From IMG/VR virus record IMGVR_UViG_3300027708_000012, positions 124,001 to 188,000 of that record: a stretch of DNA of 64,000 nt. One strand, 5' to 3'. Every line of letters starts with the position of its first letter. The first letter of the stretch is position 1. The translations under genes and the position numbers were made by a program. A model generated the notes under the pieces. It did no database searches, was not told the DNA's origin, and was given only the letters and a program-made list of their open reading frames with translations. Of the stretch, positions 3,001 to 60,777 are shown piece by piece.

Positions 3001-6000
3001 TATTACTGTTGGTGCAAATACACATAGTTTCAAACTACCTTATACTCCAAAGATAGGAACTGAAATTAATGTTTATTATTCTCAAAATTCAACAACAACA
3101 ACTCCGTCAGACGGTGTGTCGTTAAATTATAATTTTAATTTACTAATTAACCAACCAGTAGTATCAGTTGTTACTAATGTTTATTCAATAAGTTCAGTAG
3201 GTATAACTGCTTCTACAGCATTGGCAACTGTAAATGGAATTACTTCGCAATATGCAATATCTACTAATTTACAATCGGTTCTTACTTCAGTGTTTGGCGC
3301 CGTGGGACAAGGTGTAGTTGAGTTTGATCATGTATCAAATATAGTAGTAGGACAATTTGTGTCTGGCGCTGGTGTAGCAACTAATACCAAAGTAACATAT
3401 ATTTCAAATAAATTTGTTACATTGTCTACAAATCTTTCAGAAAATGCATCGGGCAACTACAACTTTTTTACTTTAGGAACATCTTTAACCTTAACCAGCA
3501 CTACAAATATTGATGCAGGGTTAAGTGTTATTGGTTTAGGATTTACAACGCAAACTGTAAGTAAAAAACTTAATTCTACTACAATTATATTATCAAGTCC
3601 TCCTGATTTAATTCCAAAAGTTGGAGAAGTAATAGAATTTACTAATAATAGTGCAGGATCTAAAATTATAAAAGTATCTTCTGTTGCAAATTTAAAGATA
3701 GGAGATGGCTGTGATATATCTACACATCAACTTGGTGTATTTGGATACAACACAAAAATAGTTAGCATAGATGTTATAAACTCTTCAGTAACATTAAATC
3801 AAATATTATTTGTTAATCTAGCAAATAATACAAGTTTAACATTTACTAGAATATTATCTCAACCTGTTGACGCTATTACATATGCAAACGGAACAGCAAC
3901 ATTAACAGAGGTTGTTCCAGTAGGCAGTGATATTTGCATATATGGAAAAATAGACCCAATTAGAATAGATGATCCTGCCTTTGGAACAAGTCAGCAAGCT
4001 AATCCGGATGCTAAAATACCTTCAATAATTATTGGAACAACACAACAACCATTATTAACGAGATATCCATTAGTAACTGGTTCTTTTGCATATGTCATAA
4101 CACTTCCTTTAGATTTTACAGTAAACAAAGGAGATGAATTTATTTTCCGCCAAAGTACAAGTGACGGATCAATTATTCCTTCAGATTACGATAGTGATAT
4201 TGTTGGCGGCGACATGGCTTATTCATCGGCGCAGGGATTACTGGCAGATGATATAGTTGTAGATGGTGACGGATTTACTACGCCAACATCAAGTCCAGCA
4301 CCAGAAGAAGTTGTTCCGGGACAAGTTGTTGATACCTTATCAATTAAAGTTTTTGACAAACCAACTGCTGGCAATGCTAATATACAAGTTAGTAATTATG
4401 TTGCAACTGGTTCTCAGGCAATTTTTGAATTACCTAAGATTTTTAGTAATTCTCAATCTATTATAGTTAAACTTGACGGAGTAATACAAACAGTTACTAC
4501 TGATTATATTATCAATTATGCAACACGATCTGTTACGTTTAATGCAACTCCGTCTGCAAAAGCAATTGTAAGTATCTTTACTATTGGTTTATCTGGGACT
4601 AACATTTTAGATATAGAATATTTTGTTGGTGATGGCACTACAACTGAATTTGTTACTAGAGCACCGTGGTTATCTGATGTTTATTCTTTGATATACGTTA
4701 ACGGTTTACTAGCTGATTATGTGTTATTTAAAACTGATAGCACTTATGATCTAGCAAATGCTACTGGAATCAGATTTGCTGTTGCTCCAGCTACCGGTGC
4801 AACAATTAATTATATTATTGTTTCAGGTAATCAACAAACATTTTCTGTGACAACTACAGAAAGAATTGCAACTAATGGAAGTAACACATATACATTGAAT
4901 ACTATCATAGGAAATTCATTTCCAAATGAATCGAATGTTATTGTTCGCGTTGATCAAAATATTTTGAGAGCTCCTAATGTTAGTTATTTTACTATTAAAT
5001 CTAATAAATTAACTTATTCTATTAATACTGATAAAATTCTTCCACAAAGTGTAAGTTTGCAAGATATAATTGTTTATGTTGATAACTTTACTTTGATATA
5101 TGGTAAAGACTATACAGTTGATCTTACTGGTATATCGATTAAAATTACTAAAGAAACATATAAAGCATATACAGGAAAACAATTAGTTATCAGTATACAA
5201 TATAATCAAGGATACATGTATAACCCTGCTACTAATCAAATAGTCTTTGCAAATTCTTATGATAGTTCACATGTAGTTGAAGTGATTTCATCATTCCGTC
5301 ACGATAGTTTAGATATACAAAGAACTGAAATAACAGCAAGAACAATTGAAAATATTACACCTGAGTCTTTGGTATATTACGAATACTTGTCCACACTTGG
5401 CGGTACAATAATATTAGATAGACCAGTAATAAATGAAAATTATATCTGGGTAATCAAGTCACGTGACGATACTAGAACCTTGTTAACACCAGGTGTTGAC
5501 TACATTCTACACGATAATCTTACAGAAATTCAATTGACTTCAACATTTGGTGTAAATGATTCAGTCGAATTAATAACTTTTGGTAGTAACATACTTAAAT
5601 CTGGTATTGCATATATGCAATTTAAAGATATGTTAAATCGAACAGTGTATAAACGATTAAGTTTGAAGAAACAAACTACATTGGCAAGTGACTTATTGTG
5701 GAATTCTACACAAATTGTATTAACTGATGCAAGCGAATTCCAATCACCTAACCAGTCAAGTAATGTACCAGGCGTTATTGAAATTCGAGGAGAGCGTATC
5801 GAGTATTTTAGTAAGGTTGGAAATATACTCAGTAACATACGCAGGGGAACATTGGGTACTGGAATTACTAGAATAAACAAAGCTGGTACATTTGTACAAG
5901 ACATTGGCAACGCAGAAACTATTCCTTATAAGGATTCGGTAAGTACAACAACGTTTGCAGCTAACGGTACTAATATTGTACCGCTGGGATTCACTCCATC

Positions 6001-6313
6001 AAGTGTAAATGAAATTGAAGTATTTGTCGGCGGCATTCGATTGAAGAAAGCACCTTATGAATTGTTTAATGTAAATTTAGGACCATATAGTAACAAGGAT
6101 ACTATTGTAAAGTTTGATGCAGAATTTACAGTTGACGGTCAGAGCAATCTGGTAACATTAACAAACGGCACACCTGAAACTGGAACTAGGGTCACAGTCA
6201 TTAAAACTACAGGAATTTCTTGGGACGGAAAAACCAGTGTAATGTCAGATACTAGCAAGATTGCTGAATTTATTAAATCAGAGCCAGGTATTTGGTATTC
6301 AGAATACAAATAA
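2..6313 (+). CDS. Very large virion structural protein (baseplate wedge/tail-associated), 5'-truncated by the window edge
   Basis: The frame is open from nt 2 (KSTDQLVTYLDVIDPIQGK...), so the listed start at 83 is internal. More than 2076 aa, rich in Thr/Ser/Val beta-type sequence, with repeated 'GSGY...P.V.I' and 'F.GDG.T..F' modules. Lies upstream of tail-fibre genes. Confidence 0.7.
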   Translation, partial: KSTDQLVTYLDVIDPIQGKIAGPADEELKYKTFYDPAVYSHSDGTVSVTVSTQTYWSKNQLGQLWWDLRSAKFIDPYFNNILYKSNTWNNLAPGATIDIYEWITSSVLPESWDAQADTPAGIALGISGTSLYGNKVYSVRQRYNNITKKFTNVYYFWVKNRRLTPAITGRRISALSVSNLISSPISEGYTYLSLIGGDSFALSNSYKYLEGNNTVLSVEYWTTDSIHRNIHSQWKLISSDSIVDLPHTIEQKWIDSLCGSDIAGRVVPDTELPPKLRYGIENRPRQSMFVNRIETLKEFVELTNISLLKHQITKTRDISKLEEYDIHPTVIHGLYDSTLDTEAELSYTNANLFQRPSLSPIIVDGKITGIMIINSGKGYLNPPYIQISGSGEGAIVRSVIDSSGRIISATVESSGYGYDDNTTCSVRDYCVLVLSDISANGVWSIYSYDPTYIDNTTRSVVGIWSRTQTQSYDVKNYWTYADWYGSYTDTSGKVLFTASQYTAADFSVATYADLNSIATKIGQLVKVLTVNTGGWELLYKYADSSSIDWTQSYSLVGIQNGTLQLNSNLYETSSTTVGYDSGIYDNTGFDIKAATELRRILNTLKNNIFINELKSSYLELFFSSIHYAHSEQLYLDWIFKTSFVRATHNVGDLGQPVYYPVDNLSNFQDYISEVKPYKTKVREYISNYTSTDISESAVTDFDLPPVFSNNALVPVETQVANEVLKFNSSVINTYPWKFWADTVGYSVTELKIVDGGSGYVTLPEVVISSNSGAGATAKAFFTNGVINRILLLTQGSGYLTAPVVSLVGGQSTGGVAARIVAIIGNGLARTNSVNIKFDRLTYTNYVNTLDVTETFTGTGSKLQYSLKWAPNVHVGKSSVYIDNNIVLRELYTLNIVSKVVGGYTQYSGTITFETAPTTLASIVVNYKKDISLLNAIDRIEFFYDPAAGEIGKEFNQLMLGIDYGGTIVGNLGFNTSKGWNDVPYAVNAWDVFDPTFNDYIITVGANTHSFKLPYTPKIGTEINVYYSQNSTTTTPSDGVSLNYNFNLLINQPVVSVVTNVYSISSVGITASTALATVNGITSQYAISTNLQSVLTSVFGAVGQGVVEFDHVSNIVVGQFVSGAGVATNTKVTYISNKFVTLSTNLSENASGNYNFFTLGTSLTLTSTTNIDAGLSVIGLGFTTQTVSKKLNSTTIILSSPPDLIPKVGEVIEFTNNSAGSKIIKVSSVANLKIGDGCDISTHQLGVFGYNTKIVSIDVINSSVTLNQILFVNLANNTSLTFTRILSQPVDAITYANGTATLTEVVPVGSDICIYGKIDPIRIDDPAFGTSQQANPDAKIPSIIIGTTQQPLLTRYPLVTGSFAYVITLPLDFTVNKGDEFIFRQSTSDGSIIPSDYDSDIVGGDMAYSSAQGLLADDIVVDGDGFTTPTSSPAPEEVVPGQVVDTLSIKVFDKPTAGNANIQVSNYVATGSQAIFELPKIFSNSQSIIVKLDGVIQTVTTDYIINYATRSVTFNATPSAKAIVSIFTIGLSGTNILDIEYFVGDGTTTEFVTRAPWLSDVYSLIYVNGLLADYVLFKTDSTYDLANATGIRFAVAPATGATINYIIVSGNQQTFSVTTTERIATNGSNTYTLNTIIGNSFPNESNVIVRVDQNILRAPNVSYFTIKSNKLTYSINTDKILPQSVSLQDIIVYVDNFTLIYGKDYTVDLTGISIKITKETYKAYTGKQLVISIQYNQGYMYNPATNQIVFANSYDSSHVVEVISSFRHDSLDIQRTEITARTIENITPESLVYYEYLSTLGGTIILDRPVINENYIWVIKSRDDTRTLLTPGVDYILHDNLTEIQLTSTFGVNDSVELITFGSNILKSGIAYMQFKDMLNRTVYKRLSLKKQTTLASDLLWNSTQIVLTDASEFQSPNQSSNVPGVIEIRGERIEYFSKVGNILSNIRRGTLGTGITRINKAGTFVQDIGNAETIPYKDSVSTTTFAANGTNIVPLGFTPSSVNEIEVFVGGIRLKKAPYELFNVNLGPYSNKDTIVKFDAEFTVDGQSNLVTLTNGTPETGTRVTVIKTTGISWDGKTSVMSDTSKIAEFIKSEPGIWYSEYK

Positions 6314-47100: not shown

Positions 47101-49149
47101 TTAACCGCGAGCTATTTTCAACCAACGATCCAATTCGTCATTGTTTTCTTTTACTGGTTTGATATCTGCCAGGATCTCAGCTAGTTTGCTAGGATCTACA
47201 CCAGCAACTTGGAATGTACCAAACAATTGTTTCTTTTCTATAGGAACAACTTTTAATCCTGCGGCTGCGAGCGTATCAAAGAATGGTTTTTCCTGTCCTG
47301 ATGTAACCCATTTGTACGGGAATTCTTTTACGGCACCACCGCCACCAAACGGATCACCTTCACCTCCGCTAAGATCTCGATATTTGATAATACCGTCTTT
47401 AGGATCAATAAAGTTTCCACTGCCTTGTGGAGTAGTCATTTTTCTAACTTGCCCACGAGCCGATGCTATAGCGTCATCTTGTTTGAATTTATCGTAATCT
47501 GCGCGAGCTGTATTGCCTGACGGCATTGCGGCAATATTATTTGGCCTAGGTTTATTGGCATTCATTGCCAATGCACTAGCTGCACCGGATGCATGACCTC
47601 TATCAGTTGCTAATTGCAATGCACTTGCACCTTCGGCACGATCTAATACTTCTTGAGCATGACTTACAGCAGCGTCCCACTTTTGATCTTCGCCGTAATC
47701 GTGACCCATTATTTCACGAATTTGTGCAATTAATGCTTTTTGATCAGCTGTTAATTCTGGTTTTGTGTCTGGTTTTGTGTCTGGTTTTGTGTCTGGTGTC
47801 GGATCGTCATGCGGCATTGGTGCAATAACATTCGGCGCAACTGGATTATTCGGTGTTGGTTGCGGTTCTGGTTTATCACTTCCTGGCGTTAATGCCAACC
47901 CTGCTCCAGTACCTAACGCTGCTCCAGCTAGTGCTGTCTTTACTGGATTTCGACCAACAACTTGACCTGCTTTAAATGCAGAACTTGGCCCTTTATATTT
48001 TACATTTTTTGCAAGACCTACATTGGGTAACGGAGTTACATTAGGACTTGCGGCACCTTTAGTAAAGTTTTTAACACCCTTCCAAGCATCTTTACCTAAT
48101 TCAATTCCTTTACCAAGTAGTTCGCTTGCTGCACCTTCGTCTGCATGTTGTTCAGCTTCAATCATTGCCAAACGATCTCGTAAACTTGCAATATTTTCTG
48201 CTACAGTTTCAGATGTTACTCCGTATTTTTGCATAGCCGCCTGAGTCTTTGGACCCATTTTGCCATCTGCAGTAATTTGTGCGCCTTTAGCAATTAACTT
48301 TTGTTGTATAGCAAATACTTTAGGATCACCGCCAGGTGGCATTGTTGTACCAGCCGGAGCGGCTGCTACAGTTGCTGGTTGACCGGCAGGCGCAGTACCG
48401 TCAAATTCACCGTGCTTGTAATCGCGAGCTAGGTTAGCGGCATCTAATCCTAATGATGCGGCAGTACCAATACCTGGAACTAATGATGCTAAACCACTTG
48501 CGCCAGCCATACCAGCGCCAACCCAGTCACCTTTTTTAGCGCGGTTATATGCATCAGCGGCACCAAATGCTAAACCAACACCTGGAATAGCCTTGCCTAA
48601 CATTTTACCAACGCCTTTTGCAGCTCCGTAAGTCCCAGCGCCAACTGCTGCTTGCTGTGCTAGACTTGCTTCAGATTCTGTTTGATAACCAAAACTTTCC
48701 ATCAATGCATTGGCAATATCAAAAGAAACACCCTCTTTTAAGGTTTTTTCCAATTGATCCACTAGTGCATTTAATTTTGCAATATCTGCATCTTCTAAAG
48801 CATCGTTGCCTTTTGGCGGCTTGTTTGTGGTGCCTGTTGGTGTTGGAGCAATATTAGCTGTAGGTGCAGGCTGTGACGGACTATTACGTTGTGCATTCAT
48901 CTGATTGTAATATTGTTCGCGTCCGTATGACTGTCCAGGTACTATAGGCATTCCAGGTTGTGGACCACCTTGTTGTGTAGGAGTTTGATTTCCTCTGTTA
49001 GCTAGTAAAGCACCGCCGGCTGCACCTAATCCTAACATTGGTAAAAGATTTGCATTTGCTCTTGCGATCGATCCTTCAGGGTCTTGACGATAGAAATTCC
49101 CACCTTCGTCGATATTATCAATTTTGTTGAGTAAATCTCTAATGTTCAT
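47101..49149 (-). CDS. Putative internal virion/ejected protein with Gly-zipper hydrophobic helices and a peptidoglycan-binding-like domain
   Basis: PGBD-like 'VFAIQQKL...ADGKMGPKTQAAM'. Several GxxxG hydrophobic stretches. N-terminus MNIRDLL, C-terminus ELDRWLKIARG. Confidence 0.6.
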   Translation of the reverse strand: MNIRDLLNKIDNIDEGGNFYRQDPEGSIARANANLLPMLGLGAAGGALLANRGNQTPTQQGGPQPGMPIVPGQSYGREQYYNQMNAQRNSPSQPAPTANIAPTPTGTTNKPPKGNDALEDADIAKLNALVDQLEKTLKEGVSFDIANALMESFGYQTESEASLAQQAAVGAGTYGAAKGVGKMLGKAIPGVGLAFGAADAYNRAKKGDWVGAGMAGASGLASLVPGIGTAASLGLDAANLARDYKHGEFDGTAPAGQPATVAAAPAGTTMPPGGDPKVFAIQQKLIAKGAQITADGKMGPKTQAAMQKYGVTSETVAENIASLRDRLAMIEAEQHADEGAASELLGKGIELGKDAWKGVKNFTKGAASPNVTPLPNVGLAKNVKYKGPSSAFKAGQVVGRNPVKTALAGAALGTGAGLALTPGSDKPEPQPTPNNPVAPNVIAPMPHDDPTPDTKPDTKPDTKPELTADQKALIAQIREIMGHDYGEDQKWDAAVSHAQEVLDRAEGASALQLATDRGHASGAASALAMNANKPRPNNIAAMPSGNTARADYDKFKQDDAIASARGQVRKMTTPQGSGNFIDPKDGIIKYRDLSGGEGDPFGGGGAVKEFPYKWVTSGQEKPFFDTLAAAGLKVVPIEKKQLFGTFQVAGVDPSKLAEILADIKPVKENNDELDRWLKIARG
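47756..47796. repeat. 12-bp tandem repeat x3 (encodes PDTK)
   Basis: tctggttttgtg x3 followed by tctgg. Confidence 0.9.
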
Positions 49150-49151
49150 TT

Positions 49152-50498
49152 TTATTCCTTTGGTACACAGTTAGGCACTGTGCGTCCGCCTTTTTTCTTA
49201 GTACCAACTGGATGATAACCTGTCCAGCATGGGTTTGAATTCTTTAATGTGCGCTTTTTAGCATTGGCTTCTTTGATAGGGTTTTGTTCGTGTTTCTTCA
49301 AATCGTTATCAAATTGTTTTACAGTGGCTTTGTTAATGCCTTTGAATCTCTTATCGCCTCGAGCATAGTTACCTTCGGCATCTGCTTTTTTAGCATCAGC
49401 ATAAGCAGCTTTTTTATACTTGCCTAACGTATCAGTACTTAATTCTTCAAGTGTACCCGGAGTGCCAGGACCTGGTTTGAATCCCATACTGTGTCCAGGA
49501 ATCTCATTTTCTTCAACATTTGAACTTAGTGCATGACCAGCTGGCCATTGAATTTTTGCCACATTTCTAAATTGATGTTGCCACTTCTGTGCATACTGCT
49601 CATCCGGAAATTGTAACATCCATTTTCTCTTATGATTTTTTATTCCTAATATCACCGGTAAGGTGATTAGATTTTTAGGTGCATCTTGTTCGAGTTTTTC
49701 TATATGAACCAGTTTCAACACATTACTATACAAATGAGCATAGTGATATGCTTCATTCCTAGATTTAAAATATTTTGTTTCTTCTTTGGGCGGTGTAGGT
49801 TTTCCAACAACGCTATTATTAATAGTTTGAAATGTAGCCGCCCATTGTAACGGAGTTACTCCATTGTTGCCTTTAATTTCTCTTTCTAAAGCACGAAGGG
49901 CACGATCAACATTAAGGTCGTTACCATAATAATCTAACATGGCTTGAAAATGTTTAGAATCAAATTTTTCAGGATTGTAGTTATCAAAATCAGTTGGAAA
50001 ATCTCCGTTGTCTACAGGATTCCATGTTTTATTCTCTTTAAACTTTATAGCATGTGTCTTAGGAGAATTCTTATAAACTTTGTGTTCATTGTCTATAGAT
50101 TTTAATGCCTGCTGTTTAGCAATACGTTCAGCTTTTTCTTCTTGTTTAGATTCTTTCATCAATACACGTTCAGCAATAGTGCTGGCATATTGATTAATTA
50201 ATTGACGTTTTTGTGCTTTGTGTTCAGCAATCTCGTCTTCTACTTTGTGAAAATATTTTCCAATAGTAGTTTCTCGACCAACTGGTTTATTAGCTAATTG
50301 TGTTTTTTCTTTAGGCTGTTGATAGTGTTGCATTGCCATTTGAACGGGCAACGATACTTTATGAGGTGTAGCTTCTTGCAATAGTTGAACATTTGCGTTT
50401 TTATCAATAATAGATAAAAACTTAGCCATGCTATCAACACCTACTACAGGCTTTGTAGCAACACCATCCATCGCCTGTAGTATGCGTTTCATGTCCAT
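49152..50498 (-). CDS. Putative internal head protein
   Basis: N-terminus MDMKRIL, multiple [LIV]xE sites, C-terminal PCWTGY...VPNCVP motif. Confidence 0.5.
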   Translation of the reverse strand: MDMKRILQAMDGVATKPVVGVDSMAKFLSIIDKNANVQLLQEATPHKVSLPVQMAMQHYQQPKEKTQLANKPVGRETTIGKYFHKVEDEIAEHKAQKRQLINQYASTIAERVLMKESKQEEKAERIAKQQALKSIDNEHKVYKNSPKTHAIKFKENKTWNPVDNGDFPTDFDNYNPEKFDSKHFQAMLDYYGNDLNVDRALRALEREIKGNNGVTPLQWAATFQTINNSVVGKPTPPKEETKYFKSRNEAYHYAHLYSNVLKLVHIEKLEQDAPKNLITLPVILGIKNHKRKWMLQFPDEQYAQKWQHQFRNVAKIQWPAGHALSSNVEENEIPGHSMGFKPGPGTPGTLEELSTDTLGKYKKAAYADAKKADAEGNYARGDKRFKGINKATVKQFDNDLKKHEQNPIKEANAKKRTLKNSNPCWTGYHPVGTKKKGGRTVPNCVPKE

Positions 50499-50502
50499 CG
50501 GA

Positions 50503-52122
50503 TTACCCCAATAGACGTTTTGTCAATGCACGGATTTGATCAACCTCACGGTTTTCAACAAGTGCTGGCTTTTCAGTACGATTTAAACGACCTGTTAGTT
50601 CTTGCATACGTGTAAAATCTGTAGACTCTTTTACAGTCTCTTTCTTTTTGTCACCGACAGCTTTCTTCATCGGTTCTTTCTTATCACCGTCTTTGTCCAT
50701 ATCTAAAAAGTCAGGCTTAACAGCTTTTGATTTTTCAGCAATGTAAGCTGTAGTTTCTTTGATGTTCTTCCACATAGCAGCTGCAGCAATCTTCTTACCC
50801 TTCTCACCGCCACCAGCTGACTTAGCTACTTTGTCAAAGCTCTTGCCTGGCTTGCCAATGTCTCCACCTGCCTTGGCTTTTTTAACTACAGCTGATTTCT
50901 TAGCCTTGCTTAGACCTGCACTTGGCTTGGCACTTTCTTTAACTGGCTTGCAAGTACATTCTCGCATAGTCATTTCGCATTCTTTACACATCTTAGAAGC
51001 TTCTTTCAAGTTGCCTGCTTTCTTAGCGGCACGAATTTTGCTACCTAAGTATTCGTCTTTACCAGACTCAACTTTACCGTCTTTATCGTAGTCTTTTTTA
51101 GCCATTTTACTTTTAGCTTCGTCTACTTTATCGCGATTGTCAAACTTTTCGTTGTCTTTCATTCCCCAAGTCTTAGCACTCTTAGGAGATTGTTTTAGTG
51201 CAGGAGCGCGGTCTTTCTTTTCTGCAGCACTTTGTGCCTTAGCGTGACTCTTAGTACCTTTACCTGATTTGGCGTTTGAAGCAATTTCATCGCCTTCGTC
51301 TTTATAGCTAGTATTTTTATGAGTAACACCTGTACTAGTTTTAGTTGCTACACCGGTGCGAGTCTTAAATGTATCACCAGTCTTAGATTTGTTGTCAAAT
51401 CCTTCTTTAGTAGTGCTAATTGGATCTTTCTGACCTGCTGGAGCCGGCATCATAGAGCCTAACTTTTTAGCTTCTTCTGCATCTTTAGCGCCTGATGGAT
51501 TTGGTACTACTGTTAAGTTTTCATCAACTTCTTCATCGTCTGGAATACCATTATGATTTCTGTCTAAACGCTTACTAGCAGCATGGAATGCTTTAGTTTG
51601 TTTATTATATTTTTCAACTTTAGATTTAACATGATCTGGAATTGGTTTTGGTGCTTCGTAAACCATGCCAGTACCGCCACATTCTGTACAAGCACGTTCA
51701 CCGCCACTTAATACACCTTCGTCAACTTTTTTGTCTTTAAGTTTTTCAGCTTGGGTTTTCTTAAGATTCTTAACTTTATCTTTTGCCTCTGATAGCATTT
51801 CTTTTAATCTCATTTTTTGTCCCTCGCTTAATGTGTCGCTATTATCTAAATGATGCCCGTACTCACTAAACTTCATTTCGTATTCTAGATAGTGATAAAC
51901 CGATGCAATATAGTCAGCAGCTTTAGTAATCTTTGCTTGTACCCATGCTTCCAACTGATCTTCATCGTTCATTTGTTGGTATAGCTTGTGTGAATAATTG
52001 GCTAGTTTGAATAAATCAGCTTTGGCCATAGCGCCTTCACGGTCTGTGTCGCCGTGTGTACCGATTACTTCACCTTCTGGTTGTTGGTCCATTTCTGGTT
52101 CCATGTTGTCTAATCCTGGCAT
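50503..52122 (-). CDS. Putative prohead core/internal protein, Lys-rich
   Basis: Many [LIV]xE-[A/G/S/N/T] sites, a CTECGGTG motif, and DxDxDG-type motifs. Confidence 0.55.
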   Translation of the reverse strand: MPGLDNMEPEMDQQPEGEVIGTHGDTDREGAMAKADLFKLANYSHKLYQQMNDEDQLEAWVQAKITKAADYIASVYHYLEYEMKFSEYGHHLDNSDTLSEGQKMRLKEMLSEAKDKVKNLKKTQAEKLKDKKVDEGVLSGGERACTECGGTGMVYEAPKPIPDHVKSKVEKYNKQTKAFHAASKRLDRNHNGIPDDEEVDENLTVVPNPSGAKDAEEAKKLGSMMPAPAGQKDPISTTKEGFDNKSKTGDTFKTRTGVATKTSTGVTHKNTSYKDEGDEIASNAKSGKGTKSHAKAQSAAEKKDRAPALKQSPKSAKTWGMKDNEKFDNRDKVDEAKSKMAKKDYDKDGKVESGKDEYLGSKIRAAKKAGNLKEASKMCKECEMTMRECTCKPVKESAKPSAGLSKAKKSAVVKKAKAGGDIGKPGKSFDKVAKSAGGGEKGKKIAAAAMWKNIKETTAYIAEKSKAVKPDFLDMDKDGDKKEPMKKAVGDKKKETVKESTDFTRMQELTGRLNRTEKPALVENREVDQIRALTKRLLG

Positions 52123-52148
52123 GAGTATACTCCGTTATCTTTATATAT

Positions 52149-52688
52149 TTAGTGTCTTTTGATGACTTTAGGACCACCGAACAGGCTAGTACTTTTAATA
52201 TCTAATCCGTTTTTAGCAGTACCGTTTTTATTTTTAGGTTGTACTACTTTGGGTTGTGGAGGTGCTTTTGTACCACTTTTGCCTGGCGACCCTGTGTAAC
52301 TCTTTTTACCACGGGCTTTTCCTGGGCTAATATGTGGAGCATCTACAGTACCAATATTTGCGGCACTAGTAGCACCTGCACTTGCTGTTTCTTCTAAAGA
52401 TCTAGCTACGTGAACTTGCTTACCATTAGCTGCTAGCTTTCTAGCAACATTTTCTGCATGACTTTTTGAACCAAATGTTTTCCATTTGCGTCCGTTAATG
52501 TGAACATCGTGCGGAACATCTGTTTGATAATGGTGTTGCTGACGATGCTTACGAGGATCTCCAGCACCAATTCTGTCGTGTGCTGCACTATAATCCCAGC
52601 TATCGGGACCTTCGTCGTTACCCGGAGATAGACTCATACCGCTATCATCGTATCCGTGTCTGCCTTCTAAAAGTTCTTTAATTTTCAT
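52149..52688 (-). CDS. Putative internal head protein
   Basis: N-terminus MKIKELLEG; also LEETASAGATS. Confidence 0.5.
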   Translation of the reverse strand: MKIKELLEGRHGYDDSGMSLSPGNDEGPDSWDYSAAHDRIGAGDPRKHRQQHHYQTDVPHDVHINGRKWKTFGSKSHAENVARKLAANGKQVHVARSLEETASAGATSAANIGTVDAPHISPGKARGKKSYTGSPGKSGTKAPPQPKVVQPKNKNGTAKNGLDIKSTSLFGGPKVIKRH

Positions 52689-52689
52689 T

Positions 52690-52902
52690 TTATTTTCCTA
52701 CAGGCTTTTCGCCAGTCATATAGGGCAAACTAAACCATAACTGAAACCACTCGGGTGTTCCTGGTTTAATATTGTTCTCACGCATTAATTTGGCCTTTTC
52801 AGTTCCAGTAATGCTTATATTCATTCCGCCTAGCTCGTAAGGTTGCAGGCCTTTAAATTCATTAACGCCAGCTAACTTTTTAAGACGAGCAATTTCATCC
52901 AT
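52690..52902 (-). CDS. Small putative head-associated protein
   Basis: MDEIARLKKLAG...IKPGTPEWFQLWF. Confidence 0.5.
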   Translation of the reverse strand: MDEIARLKKLAGVNEFKGLQPYELGGMNISITGTEKAKLMRENNIKPGTPEWFQLWFSLPYMTGEKPVGK

Positions 52903-53339
52903 TATTTTAAACTTGCTCTCAGCATCCAGCTATGTTTTTTGTGTGCATCTTGTCTATCAGCTAGAAAATTACTTAGTCCGTGATCACCGTGCTCTTCTGC
53001 CATGGTGAAAGTAATACGAAATATATTAGCCATGCGCTCGCTATCTTCTAATAATTCGCTTAACATTCCGTGAAAATCTGGTACAGCGTTTTCGTCTTCT
53101 ACTTTAGTAAGCATACTAAATTTAGCTAAACTTGCTGGAGTGTATACTTGTAACGCACGTAACTGTTCGGCAAACGTATCGATGCTACCATATACTTCGT
53201 CATAGATACGTTCAAATAGAATATGTAACTGATAAAATAGCGGACCTTCTGCGTTCCAGTGAAAATTTTGTGCCTTTAGTGCAAATGCATATTCACTAGC
53301 AAATGCAGTTTTAAGTGCTAAATGATATTTCTCGTCCAT
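52902..53339 (-). CDS. dps: Dps/ferritin-like DNA protection protein
   Basis: FHWN.EG..F..LH..FE..Y......D.FAEQLRAL...HKKHSWML. Confidence 0.9.
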   Translation of the reverse strand: MDEKYHLALKTAFASEYAFALKAQNFHWNAEGPLFYQLHILFERIYDEVYGSIDTFAEQLRALQVYTPASLAKFSMLTKVEDENAVPDFHGMLSELLEDSERMANIFRITFTMAEEHGDHGLSNFLADRQDAHKKHSWMLRASLK

Positions 53340-53340
53340 T

Positions 53341-54603
53341 TTAAATTCCGTACTTGTTCTTTTTTGGTTTAGCTACAATGCTTTTAGTGTTAGCACCTGT
53401 GGGCTCCACGCTCTTACCAAAAGAGCTAACATGTTTGCCATCTGTTGGAATAGTTTTCATAGCCGAACGAACCATGTTATCTTCCGCTTGTGTCATTGGA
53501 TGTATTGTGTTGTACTTTTCAAACCAAGTATCAACATTAACGCCGTCAATTTTTCCAGTACTAACGCCGTCTGCCATAGCCATAGCCATCATTAACCTAT
53601 TCATGTGGTATACACGATCGTATCCGCCTACATCGCGAGCACGGGTGACACCTTTGCCCACAGCATCGTGATCTGGGTGTAGCTTAGTAGTGCCTTCTTT
53701 GATAAATTCGTTAGCTTTCATTTCTCTTAATAGTTTATTAGCATATTTAATCAAATTTTCGTCGGATCGTCTATATACTTGTTGTGCTTTTTTATTGCCC
53801 AAGTCTCTTTCTATTTTCTCTGGATCCTTGGCTTTTTCTTTTTCAAAGTACTTACGCATTTCTTCAGAACTAACAGTTTTCTTTTTAACAGGGTTATCAG
53901 TCTTTGCTAAGAATCCCATTAAACTTTCGTCGGCTACCTTTTCTTTCTTAGGCTTTTTAGGTGCTTTTCCAAATGCAGGGTCGGCCATACGTTGTTCTGC
54001 TTTATGCATTAAATCTAATACTTCGTCATCGCTTAGTTCAGGACTCATTGCATCTCGCCACGCTTGAAACTTTTGTTCCTCAGTAGCATTTGGATCTTGT
54101 AATATGGCTCGCATAGGTGTAGCACGTGGACCTTCCTCATCACGACTAGGATCATTTGTTTCTTGACGAGCAATAACATTCAAACTGTTAAAATTAAATG
54201 GAACATTTCCAGCTTTGTCAGGTTTACCGTTATAGTTTTTAACATAACTTAGCGCATTAACTTGATCAGCACCGACAACAACGGTAACGTCAGTATAGCC
54301 ATGCTTACTTAACTGAGATAGTACACGAGTTAAATCAGGCATTTCGTCAGTTGCGGTATGGAAAATATGTCCGTGCTTGGGAAACACTTTCTTATAGATA
54401 TGTAATTTTTCGTCTGGAGTGATTGGATCGTCTTTACCTACTGTACGACTAACAACAAAGTATGGATCTGCTCCGTGGTCTTTAGCTTGGGTAATAACAC
54501 TACTGGCTAGATACATGTGACCTTTGTGGCCCATACCACGACCCCAGCCAACTACAGCGGCTTTGCCTTCTCCTGTACGATTAAGAAATTCACGTAATAA
54601 CAT
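53341..54603 (-). CDS. HxGH (cytidylyl/adenylyl-transferase-like) nucleotidyltransferase with C-terminal extension
   Basis: VVGWGRGMGHKGH, DPIT..EK, VVVGADQ and ATPMR. N-terminus MLLREFL. Confidence 0.7.
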   Translation of the reverse strand: MLLREFLNRTGEGKAAVVGWGRGMGHKGHMYLASSVITQAKDHGADPYFVVSRTVGKDDPITPDEKLHIYKKVFPKHGHIFHTATDEMPDLTRVLSQLSKHGYTDVTVVVGADQVNALSYVKNYNGKPDKAGNVPFNFNSLNVIARQETNDPSRDEEGPRATPMRAILQDPNATEEQKFQAWRDAMSPELSDDEVLDLMHKAEQRMADPAFGKAPKKPKKEKVADESLMGFLAKTDNPVKKKTVSSEEMRKYFEKEKAKDPEKIERDLGNKKAQQVYRRSDENLIKYANKLLREMKANEFIKEGTTKLHPDHDAVGKGVTRARDVGGYDRVYHMNRLMMAMAMADGVSTGKIDGVNVDTWFEKYNTIHPMTQAEDNMVRSAMKTIPTDGKHVSSFGKSVEPTGANTKSIVAKPKKNKYGI

Positions 54604-56456
54604 TAGTCTTTCCTCGGAGCCCAGTTGGCCTGGTCAATAGTTTTAACAAACTGTCCAGGCAAATCATTTTTAAATTTACCCCCAGGGTGTGCTTGTACGT
54701 ACCCTTCTGGTTTTGTCTGTCGTATACCGCCGTGTGTACCGGTGCTTAATGCACCAATTACTTTCATTTTTTCGTGTGTTAATAATTCAACAGCACTTAG
54801 TACAGCATCTAAGCCAGGATGACTTAGAACTTTTTGTGCCTGAGTATTGCTTAGTTTTGCAGTAGCCCATTGTTCAAACTTTTCTTTAACACCTTCAACA
54901 CGTAAATTTTGATTAAAGAAACTATACAATACATCACCGGGTTTACTTAGACCAGGTTGCCCTGCAACAAAACTATCAATTGCAGCTTTGTGTTGTTTAA
55001 TAAATGCTTCAGCATGCTTTAATCCCTCTTCGTCTACTTTAGGAGCATGCTCAACATATGTTGTACCTTGTACAATAACATCTGCTGTTGATAATTTTTC
55101 AGCATTTGGATAACGTGTTTCGTCAGCACCAATGTGTGTATAAAAACCTGTAGCAGCTATCATTACTTTTGCTTTAGCAATGCGTTTTCCTAGAGCACTA
55201 CCTGCTGGAATGTGGAAGGCTGTGATATTAGGTTGAAAATCGTATTCGTTTGTACTAGGATTTAATCTTGCTGGTGCAAGAGGACTGAATAGTATACCAC
55301 CTTCGATATATCCTTTTTTAGGACTAATGCTTTCAAAGTAAGGCCATAAATCAGCAAGCCCTTGTGCAAATGCACGTCTTTGATCTTCTTGACCAGGCTG
55401 TGGATTGCCTGTACCTAGAATAAACATAGCAACATCGTCTGGGTCATTCATCATGGTTGTAACACCGCTCTTGGTATGAGTAGTGCCACGTTTCATATAA
55501 TCCCAAGCGTTTTTTGGAAACATATGGAACACACCGTGCTCATCACGGCCCCAGTAGATAACAGGACTACCGTCCCATTTTAATTCTATGCTACCACCTT
55601 TGCTAGTCATGTGACGCAGACGTTCAACGGCATGCAGTCCGCCAGTGCTACCATTGGTAAACACTAGATCTTCAATATGTTGATACTTGCGACCTACTGT
55701 AGGTGCGGCGGCTTCATTAATTGGTTGCGGACTAACAGCTTGCCAACTTGCACCGCTTGATGCTTGTTGATATATGCTATTGCGTCGAGCTTCGTCGGGA
55801 ATAGCGTTCATGATGCTTTCTACACTTCCTAGATCTGCTGCCTTGGCATGTTTACCTAATAGTCGTTTAGCAATAACATCTAAATCATCGCTGATAAAAT
55901 CAGCTTTTTTACCCATAGCATCTCTAGCATATAGACCTTCATCGGGCGACCATAACATACCTTGATTGCTAGCCAATGCATTCATCATCATTTGTTTATG
56001 AACACCTTTGTAAGGGCTACCTTGGGGAATAGCATGATGATGGAATTTGTGAACTTTCTCGGCATTACCAACAGTTTTAATATCTACCTGATAGAATTTT
56101 TCTTTATAAGGCAATAAGATATGTACAGTTACGCCAGTTTTTTTAGTTTGTAAACCTTTGCTTTGTAGATATTTTTCTAACTCAATACGAGTAGTCTTGC
56201 CGTCTTTAGTACCAAACTTTTGCGCAAGCTGACTAGCATCTACCATTACATCCAAGTCACCGCTGATCTTTCCGGGAGTTGGAGTAGCAGCACTACCGAT
56301 TACATACGCATGAGCACCGACACCGCTGAGATAACGATTTGTTTCGTGTACTAGGTGACTGGCAATAGCCTGATCAAAACCTTCAGATTCAGGCCAAATA
56401 TTACCGCCTTCTAACAAAGGCTTTTTAACAGACCTAAATAATTCACGTAGTAACAT
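54603..56456 (-). CDS. Fusion of a Pol-beta-type nucleotidyltransferase and a ligase-like (KxDG) domain
   Basis: N-terminal half: IGS...GDLDV...YQVD. C-terminal half: HIEDL...LKWDGSP...EG..LF...EGYV...VK.ID. Linker PINEAA. Confidence 0.65.
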   Translation of the reverse strand: MLLRELFRSVKKPLLEGGNIWPESEGFDQAIASHLVHETNRYLSGVGAHAYVIGSAATPTPGKISGDLDVMVDASQLAQKFGTKDGKTTRIELEKYLQSKGLQTKKTGVTVHILLPYKEKFYQVDIKTVGNAEKVHKFHHHAIPQGSPYKGVHKQMMMNALASNQGMLWSPDEGLYARDAMGKKADFISDDLDVIAKRLLGKHAKAADLGSVESIMNAIPDEARRNSIYQQASSGASWQAVSPQPINEAAAPTVGRKYQHIEDLVFTNGSTGGLHAVERLRHMTSKGGSIELKWDGSPVIYWGRDEHGVFHMFPKNAWDYMKRGTTHTKSGVTTMMNDPDDVAMFILGTGNPQPGQEDQRRAFAQGLADLWPYFESISPKKGYIEGGILFSPLAPARLNPSTNEYDFQPNITAFHIPAGSALGKRIAKAKVMIAATGFYTHIGADETRYPNAEKLSTADVIVQGTTYVEHAPKVDEEGLKHAEAFIKQHKAAIDSFVAGQPGLSKPGDVLYSFFNQNLRVEGVKEKFEQWATAKLSNTQAQKVLSHPGLDAVLSAVELLTHEKMKVIGALSTGTHGGIRQTKPEGYVQAHPGGKFKNDLPGQFVKTIDQANWAPRKD

Positions 56457-56458
56457 TT

Positions 56459-56830
56459 TTAATCCTTGTATTTTCCAGCAGATATATGTTCTTTAACTTC
56501 TTCATACATTTTGGTGCAAGCCTGCTTACAAGTATCTTCACTTAGCTCGTCATCTAATTCTCGTATTGGAAACTTTTTCTTATAAAGTTTGTAACATTCT
56601 TTAATGGCTTCTGCAAACATTTTACTATGTGTAGCTTTTTTGCCTTTGATGCCATCAATACATTTCATTAAAACAGGATAAACATGTCTACGATAGATAT
56701 GATCATCGTTATGCATGAAATGGATGAGATCTTCGACTAGGTCGTAGTCAATTTCACGCTTTTCGCCAGTTGCTTTGACAAAATCGTCTTCTTTGAAATT
56801 ATTGTTTTCTAGTAATTCTCGTATACGCAT
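56459..56830 (-). CDS. Hypothetical protein with head-protein-type N-terminus
   Basis: Likely start at MRIRELLEN (56830); ATG 56848 is an alternative. Confidence 0.5.
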   Translation of the reverse strand: MRIRELLENNNFKEDDFVKATGEKREIDYDLVEDLIHFMHNDDHIYRRHVYPVLMKCIDGIKGKKATHSKMFAEAIKECYKLYKKKFPIRELDDELSEDTCKQACTKMYEEVKEHISAGKYKD

Positions 56831-56889
56831 TTTAAGCCCAAGTTTCATACCCAAGGTATTCCATTGGGTTTAGAGTATTTATCAACAAA

Positions 56890-57519
56890 CTATGCTTTAA
56901 TGATGCGTTCTATTTTAGAAATACTACCGCCTAAATGCATCTTAGCAAGCAATAAATTGTTATTGCCCGTAATATAGAAGTGGGAGCCGCCCCAGCTGCG
57001 TTGTTTTTCTAATTCTCTAATGCAACTTTTAGTTAATTTGCATTTTTTATTGGAACTTGCCCACTCAATAAATGCAGGGTTGGGTTGATTAGTTTTTCCT
57101 ATAGTAACTCGAAAATCAAAGTTCATTTTAGGCATGATCACAGTATCTACAGCGATCCCAGTTGCTGGCGGCTCTGAAATATATTTGATTTTATTAATAT
57201 CTATATTTGCAATCGCATCAATTTCGTTTCTACTGTTGCTATAAATTGTAAGCCACGGACTTTCTACACGTAAACTAATATCCGATAAAGTAGAAATTAC
57301 AGTTGCTAACTTAATTGCATATTCTAAATCTTCTTTAGAACGGATATTAGAACTTCTCCACCCACTAACTTTTTGAGTTTCGAATACTTTTACTTGACTA
57401 AGTTCGGTTAATGCTTTATCCATGTCACCACTACGAAACCATGCCGCACCTGGACATACCGATACTATTTTGTATTGATATCGGTTGTGGAATAGTTTCG
57501 TAGTAAGTTTATAATGCAT
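56890..57519 (-). CDS. Hypothetical protein
   Basis: 209 aa ORF. Confidence 0.55.
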   Translation of the reverse strand: MHYKLTTKLFHNRYQYKIVSVCPGAAWFRSGDMDKALTELSQVKVFETQKVSGWRSSNIRSKEDLEYAIKLATVISTLSDISLRVESPWLTIYSNSRNEIDAIANIDINKIKYISEPPATGIAVDTVIMPKMNFDFRVTIGKTNQPNPAFIEWASSNKKCKLTKSCIRELEKQRSWGGSHFYITGNNNLLLAKMHLGGSISKIERIIKA

Positions 57520-59785
57520 CTATATTAACTAATGACGTAGGTGCATTAACAGTTAACAACGGAGTTTTTGATTCCTTAGGAGTTGATAACAACACTAATT
57601 TATCAAACTGTACTGTAATGCTGAGCAACCCGCCGTTTTTTAAATCTCCAAACAGCATGAGTTTTGCCAAAGGTCGTTTAATTTCCTTATCAATAACACG
57701 CTGTAGCGGGCGAGCACCCATCTTAGGATCAAAGCCTTTGGTAATCAACCAATTAGTACTTTCCTTATCTAGTTTGATCTTAATGCCTTTTTCTTTAACT
57801 TGCGCACGTAATTCATCCATGAACTTAACAACAATTTTAGTCATTGTTTCTTTAGCAAGTTTATTGAATGTAATAATACCATCTAAACGATTACGGAACT
57901 CTGGTGTAAAGAACTTTTTCAAGTCTTTATCACTGTAGTCTTTTTCTTGTGTACCAAAACCAATAACATTCTTCTCGGCATCTTGTGCGCCAGCGTTAGT
58001 AGTCAAAATTAACACAATGTTTCGGCAATCTGCTTGTTTCCCGTTTGAACCAGTAATAAAACCATTGTCCATCATTTGTAACAATACAGTTGTTACATCC
58101 GGATGTGATTTTTCAACTTCGTCGAACAACAGAACAGCATTTGGATTTTCTTGAATCTGTGTAATCAACAAGCCTGCATTTTCTTCAAAGCCAACATAAC
58201 CGGGAGGGCTACCAATTAGCTTAGAGATGCTATGCTTCTCTTGGTACTCTGACATGTCAAACCGTAGTAGCTTGACACCCAAGTGCTTGGCAAGCGACTT
58301 GGCAGTTTCGGTCTTACCACAACCAGTTGGTCCCATGAATACAAACGATCCAATAGGCTTGCCTTCGCTTTTCAGTCCAGCTTGAGCAACCATAATCTTA
58401 TCTACAATTTCTGTAACAGCAAGATCTTGCCCATAAACTTCTTTTTGTAGGTTATCCTGTAGCGTAGCAAGATTACTAGACTCAGTTTCCATAATCTTTT
58501 CTTCAGGCATCTGAATCATTTTAGCAAGTTCATATTGAATTTCACGTTCGCCAATGATACGTTCGTCTGCAAGTTTAAGATTAAAACGACTACATGCTAC
58601 ATCAATTAGATCAATAGCCTTGTCTGGAAGTTTTTTGTCTGTTTGATACTTAACTGACAATTTAATAGCAGCATCAATAGCATCATCACGAATTTTAACT
58701 TTGTGAAAACCTTCGTAGTATTTCTTAATACCTTTAAGGATTTGTTTAGTTACTTCGATAGTTGGCTCATCAACTGTAATGCGTTGGAATCGACGCATTA
58801 GCGCACGATCTTTTTCAAAGTGCTTGCGATATTCTTCCCATGTAGTACTAGCAATAACTTTAATATTGCCTTTACTCAACGCAGGCTTCATCATGTTGGC
58901 AAGATCGTTAGCCGAGTTACCAGCAGAACCAGCACCGCTAATCATGTGTGCTTCGTCGATGAACAAAACAGTCTTGCCCTTCTTCTGCAATGCCTTAATA
59001 ACAAGTTTAAAGCGTTCTTCAAAGTCACCGCGATACTTAGATCCGGCAAGCATGGCTGAAATGTCTAGACTGTAAACTTTGTATTCTTTCAAGAATTCTG
59101 GAACAGCACCGTTTACAATATTGTAAGCAAGTCCTTCTGCAATAGCGGTTTTACCTACGCCAGGATCTCCTACTAGAATCACATTATTTTTTTGTCGACG
59201 TCCTAATGCTAGAGCAATATTTTCTAGTTCGTCGATTCGACCAATAACCGGATCAACTTTTTGTTTTTCAACAAGATCGTTAAGATTGCTTGTAAATGCC
59301 TTTAGTGCTTTTTCACCTTGTGAATCGCTAGGCGATTCTTCATCTTGATCAGTATTACTATTGTTTAAATAGTCGTTAAATTTATCTTTATCGATATTAG
59401 CCTGCATGATATAAAAATGAGCCCAACTACGCTTCTCAGCCATCATACTCAACATAATATCTGTAGGTTCGATACGTTGTCGACCATTAAACAAGACTTG
59501 TGTAAATGCACGATTAAGTACACGCTCTACACTTTGAGTTTTCTTTGGTTTTACTACAACATCAGGAACTGTAATTTCTTCACATTTATTCTGTATGTAT
59601 TCTGTTAAATTATTTTTTAATGCTGTTGCATCTGCTCCGTATCCTTGTAGGATATCGGTAAATGCTGAATCTGATAACATTGCAAACAACAAGTGCTCGA
59701 TTGTTAAGTATTCGTGATGTAGCTTTTTAGCAGTATCTATTGCTTTTTCAAAAACTGCCTGCAGGTTATCACTTGGTTCGACCAT
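57509..59785 (-). CDS. clpA: ClpA-like AAA+ chaperone
   Basis: Clp N-domain (HEYLTIEHLL), GDPGVGKT, GPTGCGKT, RFDMSEY and an IGF loop. No ClpB middle domain. Confidence 0.93.
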   Translation of the reverse strand: MVEPSDNLQAVFEKAIDTAKKLHHEYLTIEHLLFAMLSDSAFTDILQGYGADATALKNNLTEYIQNKCEEITVPDVVVKPKKTQSVERVLNRAFTQVLFNGRQRIEPTDIMLSMMAEKRSWAHFYIMQANIDKDKFNDYLNNSNTDQDEESPSDSQGEKALKAFTSNLNDLVEKQKVDPVIGRIDELENIALALGRRQKNNVILVGDPGVGKTAIAEGLAYNIVNGAVPEFLKEYKVYSLDISAMLAGSKYRGDFEERFKLVIKALQKKGKTVLFIDEAHMISGAGSAGNSANDLANMMKPALSKGNIKVIASTTWEEYRKHFEKDRALMRRFQRITVDEPTIEVTKQILKGIKKYYEGFHKVKIRDDAIDAAIKLSVKYQTDKKLPDKAIDLIDVACSRFNLKLADERIIGEREIQYELAKMIQMPEEKIMETESSNLATLQDNLQKEVYGQDLAVTEIVDKIMVAQAGLKSEGKPIGSFVFMGPTGCGKTETAKSLAKHLGVKLLRFDMSEYQEKHSISKLIGSPPGYVGFEENAGLLITQIQENPNAVLLFDEVEKSHPDVTTVLLQMMDNGFITGSNGKQADCRNIVLILTTNAGAQDAEKNVIGFGTQEKDYSDKDLKKFFTPEFRNRLDGIITFNKLAKETMTKIVVKFMDELRAQVKEKGIKIKLDKESTNWLITKGFDPKMGARPLQRVIDKEIKRPLAKLMLFGDLKNGGLLSITVQFDKLVLLSTPKESKTPLLTVNAPTSLVNIDAL

Positions 59786-59813: not shown

Positions 59814-59842
59814 ATTATATACAAAAAAATACTAGTAGTCAA
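59814..59842 (-). promoter_or_regulatory. Sigma70-like promoter
   Basis: TTGACT-17 nt-TATAAT upstream of clpA. Confidence 0.75.
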
Positions 59843-60723: not shown

Positions 60724-60777
60724 AAAAAAGGCTCCAGTAATAGTATTAATTATACTATCTTAACTGGAGCCTGTCAA
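60724..60777 (-). terminator. Intrinsic terminator hairpin enclosing a consensus sigma70 promoter
   Basis: AGGCTCCAGT...ACTGGAGCCT followed by a T-run; TTGACA(60777-60772)-17 nt-TATAAT(60754-60749). Confidence 0.75.

Follow-up and report, generated by a model that had tools for sequence, protein, structure and literature searches.

A possible capsid-loaded break-repair module of PolX-like, DUF6267 ligase-like and HIGH-motif transferase domains in a T4-like jumbo phage

Introduction

In African swine fever virus (ASFV), a family-X DNA polymerase (PolX) and a DNA ligase take part in virion-associated base-excision repair as separate proteins. Here, we describe a bacteriophage locus in which a predicted polymerase and a predicted ligase form one polypeptide. 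The locus lies in a window of 64,000 nucleotides (nt), i.e. the whole stretch of DNA that was analysed, which corresponds to bases 124001-188000 of the 345,369-bp IMG/VR virus record IMGVR_UViG_3300027708_000012 (completeness estimate 94%). Two overlapping genes encode protein A, which joins a PolX-like domain to a ligase-like domain of the Pfam family DUF6267 (residues 251-616), and protein B, a HIGH-motif transferase. We propose that A and B constitute a three-enzyme module for the repair of nucleic-acid breaks that is loaded into the capsid. The three enzymes are very probably functionally coupled, and break repair is their likely role; the whole chain, delivery included, falls a little short of an even chance.

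The source is a T4-like jumbo phage of aquatic metagenomes, as indicated by a T4-type DNA polymerase gene, an S77 (T4 gp21-type) prohead protease (match E 5.6e-27) adjoining scaffold-like and major capsid-like genes, 29 tRNA genes (a cluster of 28 and one tRNA-Met at 5282-5358, outside the window) and a DNA ligase of its own. The latter is canonical, ATP-dependent and encoded by a separate gene (G000:229758-230324), which is the sole PF01068 match in the genome.

A PolX domain, a DUF6267 ligase and a HIGH-motif transferase are not found together in any of the nearest known systems. The ligase of ASFV is a canonical ATP-dependent DNA ligase, whereas the ligase here belongs to DUF6267, is nearest to RNA ligases and lacks an oligonucleotide/oligosaccharide-binding (OB) domain. 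The HIGH-motif transferase is a third, obligately linked component, and no apurinic/apyrimidinic endonuclease was found in the block. LigD, of bacterial non-homologous end joining, likewise fuses a nucleotide-adding domain to a sealing ligase for break repair. It prefers ribonucleotide addition and 3'-ribo nicks, a preference similar to the one that a sealing domain of the RNA-ligase-like kind would lead us to expect here. LigD differs by its archaeo-eukaryotic primase polymerase, its canonical DNA ligase with an OB domain and its lack of a HIGH-motif transferase, whereas the locus described here has a PolX and no Ku partner.

Pairs of RlaP and Rnl, from bacteria and jumbo phages, also couple a Pol-beta nucleotidyltransferase (NTase) to an ATP-dependent enzyme of the RNA-ligase type, with addition at the 3'-OH before sealing (PMC7824862, PMC12776372). 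In contrast to them, A has a PolX thumb and lacks PF10127, DUF6267 is neither Rnl1 nor Rnl2 by profile, and there are no kinase or phosphatase healing partners. As to delivery, the internal proteins of T4 have N-terminal capsid-targeting propeptides of 10-19 residues, and the S77 protease gp21 cuts after the Glu of [I/L]-x-E, at ITE-6, LTE-619 (in Alt) and LIE-9 (PMC9026906, PMC5694885); A and B have short leaders and candidate sites of the same kind. The T4 cargo consists of small inhibitors or an ADP-ribosyltransferase, not of a polymerase, a ligase or an adenylyltransferase. Finally, the 'cytidylyltransferase' of cyanomyoviruses is a homolog of the N-terminal domain of B (25-35% identity), stands beside DUF6267 or is fused to it, and has been detected in virion proteomes (PMC9146016, PMC10665884). 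It is usually classed as an auxiliary gene of cell-wall or carbon metabolism, or as TagD-like, and its ligase partner and the PolX have gone unremarked. Searches for DUF6267 and for the misspelt annotation 'cytitidyltransferase' found no paper in the literature library that was covered.

Three nucleotidyl-transfer folds in two proteins

The original prediction, made from the sequence of the window, had described three nucleotidyl-transfer folds: a Pol-beta type, a ligase-like domain with the KxDG motif of lysine-nucleotidyl enzymes and an HxGH transferase. Structure prediction and fold search agree with it, in the case of the ligase-like domain by a moderate match, and place the transferase closest to nicotinamide mononucleotide (NMN) adenylyltransferases (NMNATs). 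We consider the enzyme-fold assignments of the three domains highly probable. The open reading frames (ORFs), their TAATG overlap and their shared start MLLRE[FL] are all present as described (Table 1). The motifs named for A and B are also present, and they and the catalytic residues are conserved in homologs down to 25% identity. Residue counts for A refer to 105 diverse homolog fragments with 25-90% identity to the query. Several hundred full-length metagenome homologs were retrieved for A, and likewise for B. Searches of A and B against PDB chains, with single sequences and with profiles, gave nothing significant, and a nucleotide search of the region against a phage collection gave no match.

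Protein A was modelled with AlphaFold2 on a 105-row alignment. The predicted local distance difference test (pLDDT) is 92.4, and disorder is confined to amino acids (aa) 1-12 and to the linker at aa 242-250. Fold comparison of the model superposes the N-terminal palm on those of Pol beta, Pol lambda and ASFV PolX. A thumb subdomain follows directly after the palm, a feature that sets PolX apart from terminal uridylyltransferases (TUTases), CCA-adding enzymes and CD-NTases. Judged from the model, this half of A is a minimal family-X DNA polymerase, made of palm and thumb like ASFV PolX. The Pol-beta fold foreseen by the original prediction is thereby upheld, and the assignment is refined to a family-X palm with its thumb. 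A reading as a CCA-adding enzyme or a TUTase was rejected: those enzymes align over the palm only, with lower Z. To our knowledge, family-X polymerases are rare in phages. The catalytic positions are strongly conserved: G54 in 62/62 and S55 in 52/62 sequences, D67, D69 and Q123 in all 64, and D125 in 63 of 64. Curated sequence profiles do not recognise this domain. There is no Pfam match in aa 1-255 at E up to 10, including to DNA_pol_B_palm and DNA_pol_B_thumb; PF14792 is touched by only two of the 105 homolog fragments (E 0.037); the sole match of a PDB profile search is the TUTase Tailor (E 0.08); the RlaP profile PF10127 matches neither A (E up to 10) nor the 105 homologs (E up to 0.05); and tblastn of the domain against phages found no match.

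The C-terminal half of A carries the motifs of a lysine-nucleotidyl ligase. In motif I, K293, D295 and G296 are present in 77/77 sequences and W294 in 73/77. Motifs IV and V are equally well kept (E584 in 55/56, G585 in 55/55, K605 in 46/46), and every one of the 77 sequences has the acid of motif III, either as E385 or as D/E387, a case of covariation. Motifs IV and V are separated by 21 residues, a spacing that we take to be typical of Rnl2. The model has a helical insert instead of an OB barrel, and the nearest folds are nick-sealing ligases of the Rnl2/Rnl5 type. The model suggests that DUF6267 is a divergent lysine-nucleotidyl ligase with a full motif set, presumably a specialised one, since the genome has a separate canonical DNA ligase. 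PF09414 (RNA_ligase) has no match anywhere in the genome. A capping enzyme, another reading of the KxDG domain, was rejected because the nearest folds and the look-alike clusters are RNA ligases and there is no methyltransferase or triphosphatase partner. DUF6267-like domains also occur within viral proteins of 700-1100 aa annotated as ParB/sulfiredoxin, SET domain or ribonucleotide reductase (BFVD/AFDB). Among giant-virus proteins, two that bear the annotations 'DNA polymerase beta' and 'DNA-directed DNA polymerase' align over both domains of A, so PolX-ligase fusions perhaps exist in giant viruses too.

The model of B, built from closer homologs only, has the Rossmann-like fold of the HIGH-motif family. 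Close homologs show no variation in the motifs H26-K-G28-H29 and R160-A-T162-x-x-R165; inclusion of cyanophage and pelagiphage homologs leaves G28, H29 and R165 invariant. For example, the homolog in cyanophage S-SZBM1 carries HAGH and SASKMR in the corresponding places. Over the full domain, the best structural matches are NMNAT, NadM, NadD and NadR, and fold scores do not separate NMNAT from PPAT, FADS or GCT. By its model, the N-terminal domain of B is a HIGH-motif nucleotidylyltransferase nearest to the adenylyltransferases of NMN and nicotinate mononucleotide. B itself has no Pfam match; distant fused homologs score 21.8-32.6 bits against PF01467, for which the cut-off is 21. The C-terminal half of B differs in length and sequence among homologs, nearly all of which end in K-x-K-x-N-K-Y-G-[IV]. 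In T4, Alt is processed at its C-terminus.

Linkage of the domains and their distribution

We analysed linkage in 80 related viral contigs retrieved by a pattern-based search. These are close relatives only, which inform on synteny and add little diversity. The ligase domain ends 0-20 nt before B in 79 of the 80, and the PolX-like domain precedes the ligase wherever room allows, save in two or three loci. There are also natural fusions of A and B, of 984-1003 aa. In distant proteins, a PolX-like domain, DUF6267 and CTP_transf_like are united in a single chain, with two or more arrangements of the three, and one of these three-domain fusions additionally carries an NT5C/HAD phosphatase. The coupling of the two proteins that the original prediction had proposed is upheld by these contigs and fusions.

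The PolX-like domain is the more variable partner. Across these loci (L005-L084) it is a mosaic, with 30-93% identity where the ligase domain has 66-93%, which suggests domain swapping by recombination. In two of them (L042 and L045), the ligase and B are present and a PolX-like domain is not detectable. In cyanophages of the Kyanoviridae, DUF6267 and the transferase are adjacent (S-CAM9, S-8S56, S-SZBM1), and in cyanophage S-PM2 they are fused (d138). The genes upstream of DUF6267 in S-CAM9 and S-8S56 show no similarity to the PolX-like domain by BLASTP. As far as sequence comparison reaches, no PolX is detectable at this position in cyanophages. The PolX-like domain is an addition within the jumbo-phage clade. 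In pelagiphage HTVC008M, a gene of 410 aa, a candidate for the ligase, lies upstream of the transferase; in Melnitz, a phage of Methylophilales, the gene upstream carries KWDG and is separated from the transferase by one small gene. In these phages, UvsX, MazG and the gp41 helicase are among the neighbours of the ligase-transferase pair.

Conservation of DUF6267 and of the cyanophage 'cytidylyltransferase' extends over viruses that rank among the most abundant of lakes and oceans: T4-like cyanophages, pelagiphages and this clade of jumbo phages. Reading the pair as a ligase and its transferase partner, joined by a PolX in this clade, turns it into a testable repair pathway.

Leaders, candidate cleavage sites and packaging

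A and B both begin with MLLRE[LF]. The more general leader M-x-[ILF]-[RK]-[ED]-[LIF]-[LIF] starts 11 of 381 crude genes, where 1.3 are expected from the rate at internal Met residues (Poisson 1.6e-7). It is present in 105 of 111 full-length homologs of A and in 109 of 119 homologs of B, and the residues L3, R4, E5 and F7 of the leader of A are invariant in 30 homologs. Stand-alone homologs of the PolX-like domain have no leader and start right at (L)NEGGN. Many distant stand-alone DUF6267 proteins start with M-R-A-x-E-F-L-x-E followed by AAAP, and others, which have no leader, begin precisely with the first residues that are conserved, G-R-x-Y-Q-H.

The original prediction took both proteins to be apparently packaged and named INE↓A as a putative cleavage site in A (the arrow marks the candidate cut). 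This site is in the linker at aa 242-250, one of the two disordered parts of the model. The linker sequence P-I-N-E↓A-A-A-P is the same element as the end of the leader in stand-alone DUF6267 proteins (xxE↓AAAP). Two residues ahead of the Glu, 93 of 111 homologs of A have I, L, V or M; in the remaining 18, an earlier Glu was scored in a longer linker, which has FFE↓AA further on. In fusions, [ILVF]-x-E is retained without exception at the junction between ligase and transferase (NIQE↓N, DVQE↓N, KIDE↓S, VVNE↓A, RMFE↓A), and [IL]-x-E↓GG[NK] stands before the PolX-like domain in every case. In B, the candidate site is LRE-5.

A motif that we liken to the T4 late promoter, ATAAATA, has 72 copies in the genome, of which 58 (44/55 on the minus and 14/17 on the plus strand) stand no more than 60 nt ahead of a gene start, and it is probably the late promoter of this phage, to judge from its placement. 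Of the full octamer of the T4 late promoter, TATAAATA, the window has a single copy where 10.8 are expected, and the operon, where only ATAAATA stands, has none. In purified virions of S-SZBM1, the cytidylyltransferase S-SZBM1_140 and its downstream neighbour _139 were detected (PMC9146016); the former is a homolog of B (E 2e-10). In those of S-CREM2, ORF154-156 were detected, and ORF154 is annotated as a cytidylyltransferase, its likeness to B being by annotation only (PMC10665884).

Because the leaders and the [I/L/V]-x-E sites resemble T4 propeptides and gp21 sites, a course of late synthesis, prohead loading, cutting and ejection is likely by analogy with T4, and we give capsid delivery of A and B an even chance or slightly better. 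The packaging claim of the original prediction is strengthened, though indirectly, by the sites at domain boundaries, the S77 protease, the late-promoter-like motif and the virion-detected cyanophage homolog of B.

One further leader-bearing gene is a 79-aa ORF that starts MILRELFYIDPE and lies in the head-morphogenesis cluster (G000:C1:92877-93116, minus strand; locus L002 3017-3253). Downstream of it follow the genes for an acidic protein of 305 aa, the S77 protease, a scaffold-like coiled-coil protein and the capsid, and we take its position to be that of the small prohead core proteins gp67/gp68 of T4.

Proposed mechanism and competing explanations

In the mechanism that we propose, A and B would be made late, built into the prohead core and cut by the S77 protease into polymerase, ligase and transferase. 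The cut enzymes would be ejected with the genome, so that breaks from environmental damage or from host nicking could be mended before phage genes are expressed. At a nick or short gap, the PolX domain would extend or fill the side that has the 3'-OH, perhaps by adding ribonucleotides, and the ligase would seal the nick via a Lys293-nucleoside monophosphate (NMP) intermediate. B might make or regenerate the nucleotide cofactor of the ligase, e.g. nicotinamide adenine dinucleotide (NAD+) from NMN and ATP, or adenylylate a phosphate acceptor. This is a guess; cofactor regeneration is the simplest idea because it explains the obligate pairing with the ligase. The neighbouring Dps may coat or protect DNA. 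As substrate, nicked or gapped DNA is somewhat more probable than RNA, given the PolX thumb, the Dps neighbour, the replication context in cyanophages, the fusion to an HAD phosphatase and the separate replicative ligase. The original prediction had pictured a kit that repairs cleaved tRNA or other RNA, restores NAD+ or NMPylates host targets; nucleic-acid repair is retained from it, and the substrate is now likeliest to be DNA (PolX fold, Dps, cyanophage replication genes).

A bolder version, which we find unlikely, is a capsid-delivered, protease-matured 'polyprotein' kit. A precursor of PolX and ligase, in some cases with the transferase, would be cut by the prohead protease at [I/L]-x-E sites, and its parts would leave the capsid together with the genome; the PolX would then lay a short, possibly ribonucleotide, patch, the RNA-ligase-like enzyme would seal it, and the NMNAT-like partner would regenerate the cofactor or adenylylate the 5'-phosphate. 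The 'ribo-patch' mode, similar to that of LigD, is suggested by the RNA-ligase-like nature of the sealing domain. If true, mending of the incoming DNA would depend on neither the ligase nor the NAD+ of the host, phages would have their first DNA repair system that is carried in the virion, and a function could be given to a gene pair that is conserved in many marine cyanophages and occurs in a pelagiphage. If capsid targeting holds, T4-style protein delivery would extend from small inhibitors to whole enzymatic pathways, and the leader and cleavage sites would provide a natural code for loading enzymes into capsids.

Several observations weigh against a capsid-loaded repair module. A motif as short as [I/L]-x-E is common, and EGGN may belong to the polymerase fold and nothing more. 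The cyanophage homologs have no leader. Neither domain of A is assigned to a named polymerase or ligase family by sequence profiles, the fold match of the ligase is moderate only and its nearest solved relatives are RNA ligases, and the role of B as a cofactor maker is conjectural. Other such points concern expression and context, and they are also the ones that speak for an unpackaged module, in which the same three enzymes would serve replication, repair and stress in the cytoplasm together with DnaJ, the Clp-like ATPase and Dps, the N-terminal motif being a recognition signal for the Clp-like ATPase or a preference of translation initiation. Strong early promoters of the sigma-70-like type, which serve dnaJ and clp, lie directly upstream of the operon, and no terminator is predicted in the stretch from them to A. 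The operon is surrounded by chaperone and replication genes, not structural genes; the block DnaJ-Clp-g209-g131-A-B-Dps is kept as a unit in related phages, the cyanophage genes sit in a replication cluster, and a DUF6267 homolog is in neither of the two published virion protein lists, of S-SZBM1 and S-CREM2. We regard this as possible and rather doubtful. Against it speaks that leaderless orthologs begin precisely at the predicted cleavage point, that [ILVF]-x-E is kept at every fusion junction within otherwise variable, disordered linkers, that the leader also occurs on a small ORF in the prohead-core cluster, and that virions contain a homolog of B in S-SZBM1 and an annotated cytidylyltransferase in S-CREM2 (PMC9146016, PMC10665884).

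The nature of the sealing domain keeps RNA repair of the RlaP-Rnl type as a rival, one that we judge on the whole unlikely. The Pol-beta-type domain would restore one or two nucleotides at a 3' end cut by a host anticodon nuclease, and an Rnl2-like ligase would reseal the tRNA or other RNA. The nearest solved relatives of the ligase are indeed the RNA ligases TbREL1 and NgrRnl, PF09414-bearing clusters are also near, the genome has its 29 tRNA genes, and Pol-beta NTases that add one or two NMPs before ligation are a known theme in jumbo phages (PMC7824862, PMC12776372). However, the N-terminal domain of A is not RlaP and has no PF10127 signal; its fold includes the thumb with which Pol beta and ASFV PolX grip duplex DNA; the conserved block shows no partner of the polynucleotide kinase, 2H or cyclic phosphodiesterase kind; and the genes nearby encode Dps or, in the case of cyanophages, serve DNA replication. 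The structural matches of B to NMNAT, NadM, NadD and NadR fit counter-defence by NAD+ restoration, in which B would be a true NMN adenylyltransferase that rebuilds NAD+ after NAD-depleting defences, the polymerase-ligase being merely a neighbour. Phage pathways of NAD+ reconstitution are known (Osterman et al. 2024, cited in PMC12801897), and we deem this explanation improbable. Hardly credible at all is NMPylation of host proteins, with one or more of the transferases adding AMP or UMP to them after injection, in the manner of the packaged T4 ADP-ribosyltransferase Alt. Pol-beta NTases predicted to modify proteins do occur in packaged 'polyvalent' phage proteins (PMC5512222), and DUF6267 has large multidomain relatives, including ParB/Srx and SET fusions in BFVD. 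But the N-terminal domain of A groups with nucleic-acid polymerases and not with protein-modifying NTases, nucleic-acid ends are the known targets of KxDG enzymes, and no protein-targeting domain was found.

Genomic context and other features

Table 1. Features of the A-B locus and its surroundings (coordinates of the window; empty cells, nothing to report).
Feature	Position	Strand	Details
ATAAATA copies in the window	20405, 25091, 25859, 56876, 61635	minus	
Leader-bearing genes of the run	47101-56854	minus	682 aa MNIRDLL..IDE↓GG; 179 aa MKIKELLE↓G; B; A; g131 MRIRELLE↓N
Dps/ferritin-like DNA-binding protein	52902..53339	minus	one base downstream of B; Pfam Ferritin 1.1e-19, PHROG 3636 6.7e-29
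ORF B, 420 aa	53341..54603	minus	as in the original prediction
B aa 214-420, variable Lys-rich half	53344..53964	minus	ends K-x-K-x-N-K-Y-G-I; mostly low confidence, pLDDT 41-71
B aa 1-213, leader MLLRE↓F, then predicted HIGH-motif nucleotidylyltransferase domain (aa 12-213)	53965..54603	minus	H26-K-G-H29; R160-A-T-P-M-R165
TAATG, stop of A and start of B sharing one base	54601..54605	minus	read from the sequence
ORF A, 617 aa	54603..56456	minus	as in the original prediction
A aa 251-617, DUF6267 lysine-nucleotidyl ligase-like domain	54606..55706	minus	K293-W-D-G, E385, E584-G-Y-V, K605; ~100-aa helical insert at aa 476-571
A aa 242-250, disordered linker with INE↓AAAP	55707..55733	minus	candidate cleavage site, INE-248; pLDDT <50
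A aa 17-241, minimal family-X DNA-polymerase-like domain (palm and thumb)	55734..56408	minus	G54-S55, D67-x-D69, D125
A aa 1-16, leader	56409..56456	minus	candidate prohead-protease sites LRE-5 and LLE-16, then GGN; pLDDT <50 for aa 1-12
g131, small protein starting MRIRELLE	56459..56830	minus	first leader-bearing gene of the operon
ATAAATA motif GATAAATA	56876..56882	minus	T4-type late-promoter-like; motif alone; 28 nt ahead of g131, with which the run g131-A-B-Dps opens
Predicted sigma-70 promoter, near-perfect (11/12)	59814-59842	minus	upstream of 758-aa ClpA/ClpB-like ATPase (57509-59785)
Predicted sigma-70 promoter, perfect (12/12)	60749-60777	minus	upstream of phage DnaJ (59848-60717)

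Two genes flank A and B (Table 1). g131 is directly upstream of A in 64 of the 80 related loci and has no family match in protein-family scans; the Dps gene is downstream of B in 46 related loci. All of them belong to a tightly packed minus-strand gene run, five genes of which share the leader. One of these encodes a 682-aa protein with a peptidoglycan-binding/endolysin-like segment (PHROG 34252, 18972) and long stretches rich in Ala, Gly and Pro, for which reason it may be an ejected cell-wall enzyme.

Elsewhere in the window, a 448-aa protein (49152-50498) has a C-terminal Cys-containing motif, NPCW.GY...VPNC, that matches six PHROG families, and a plus-strand ORF of at least 2103 aa (2-6313) runs off the window start. 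Outside the window, ARAGORN predicts the tRNA cluster together with a tmRNA-like gene, at G000:C1:261025-275644 and 283032-283475.

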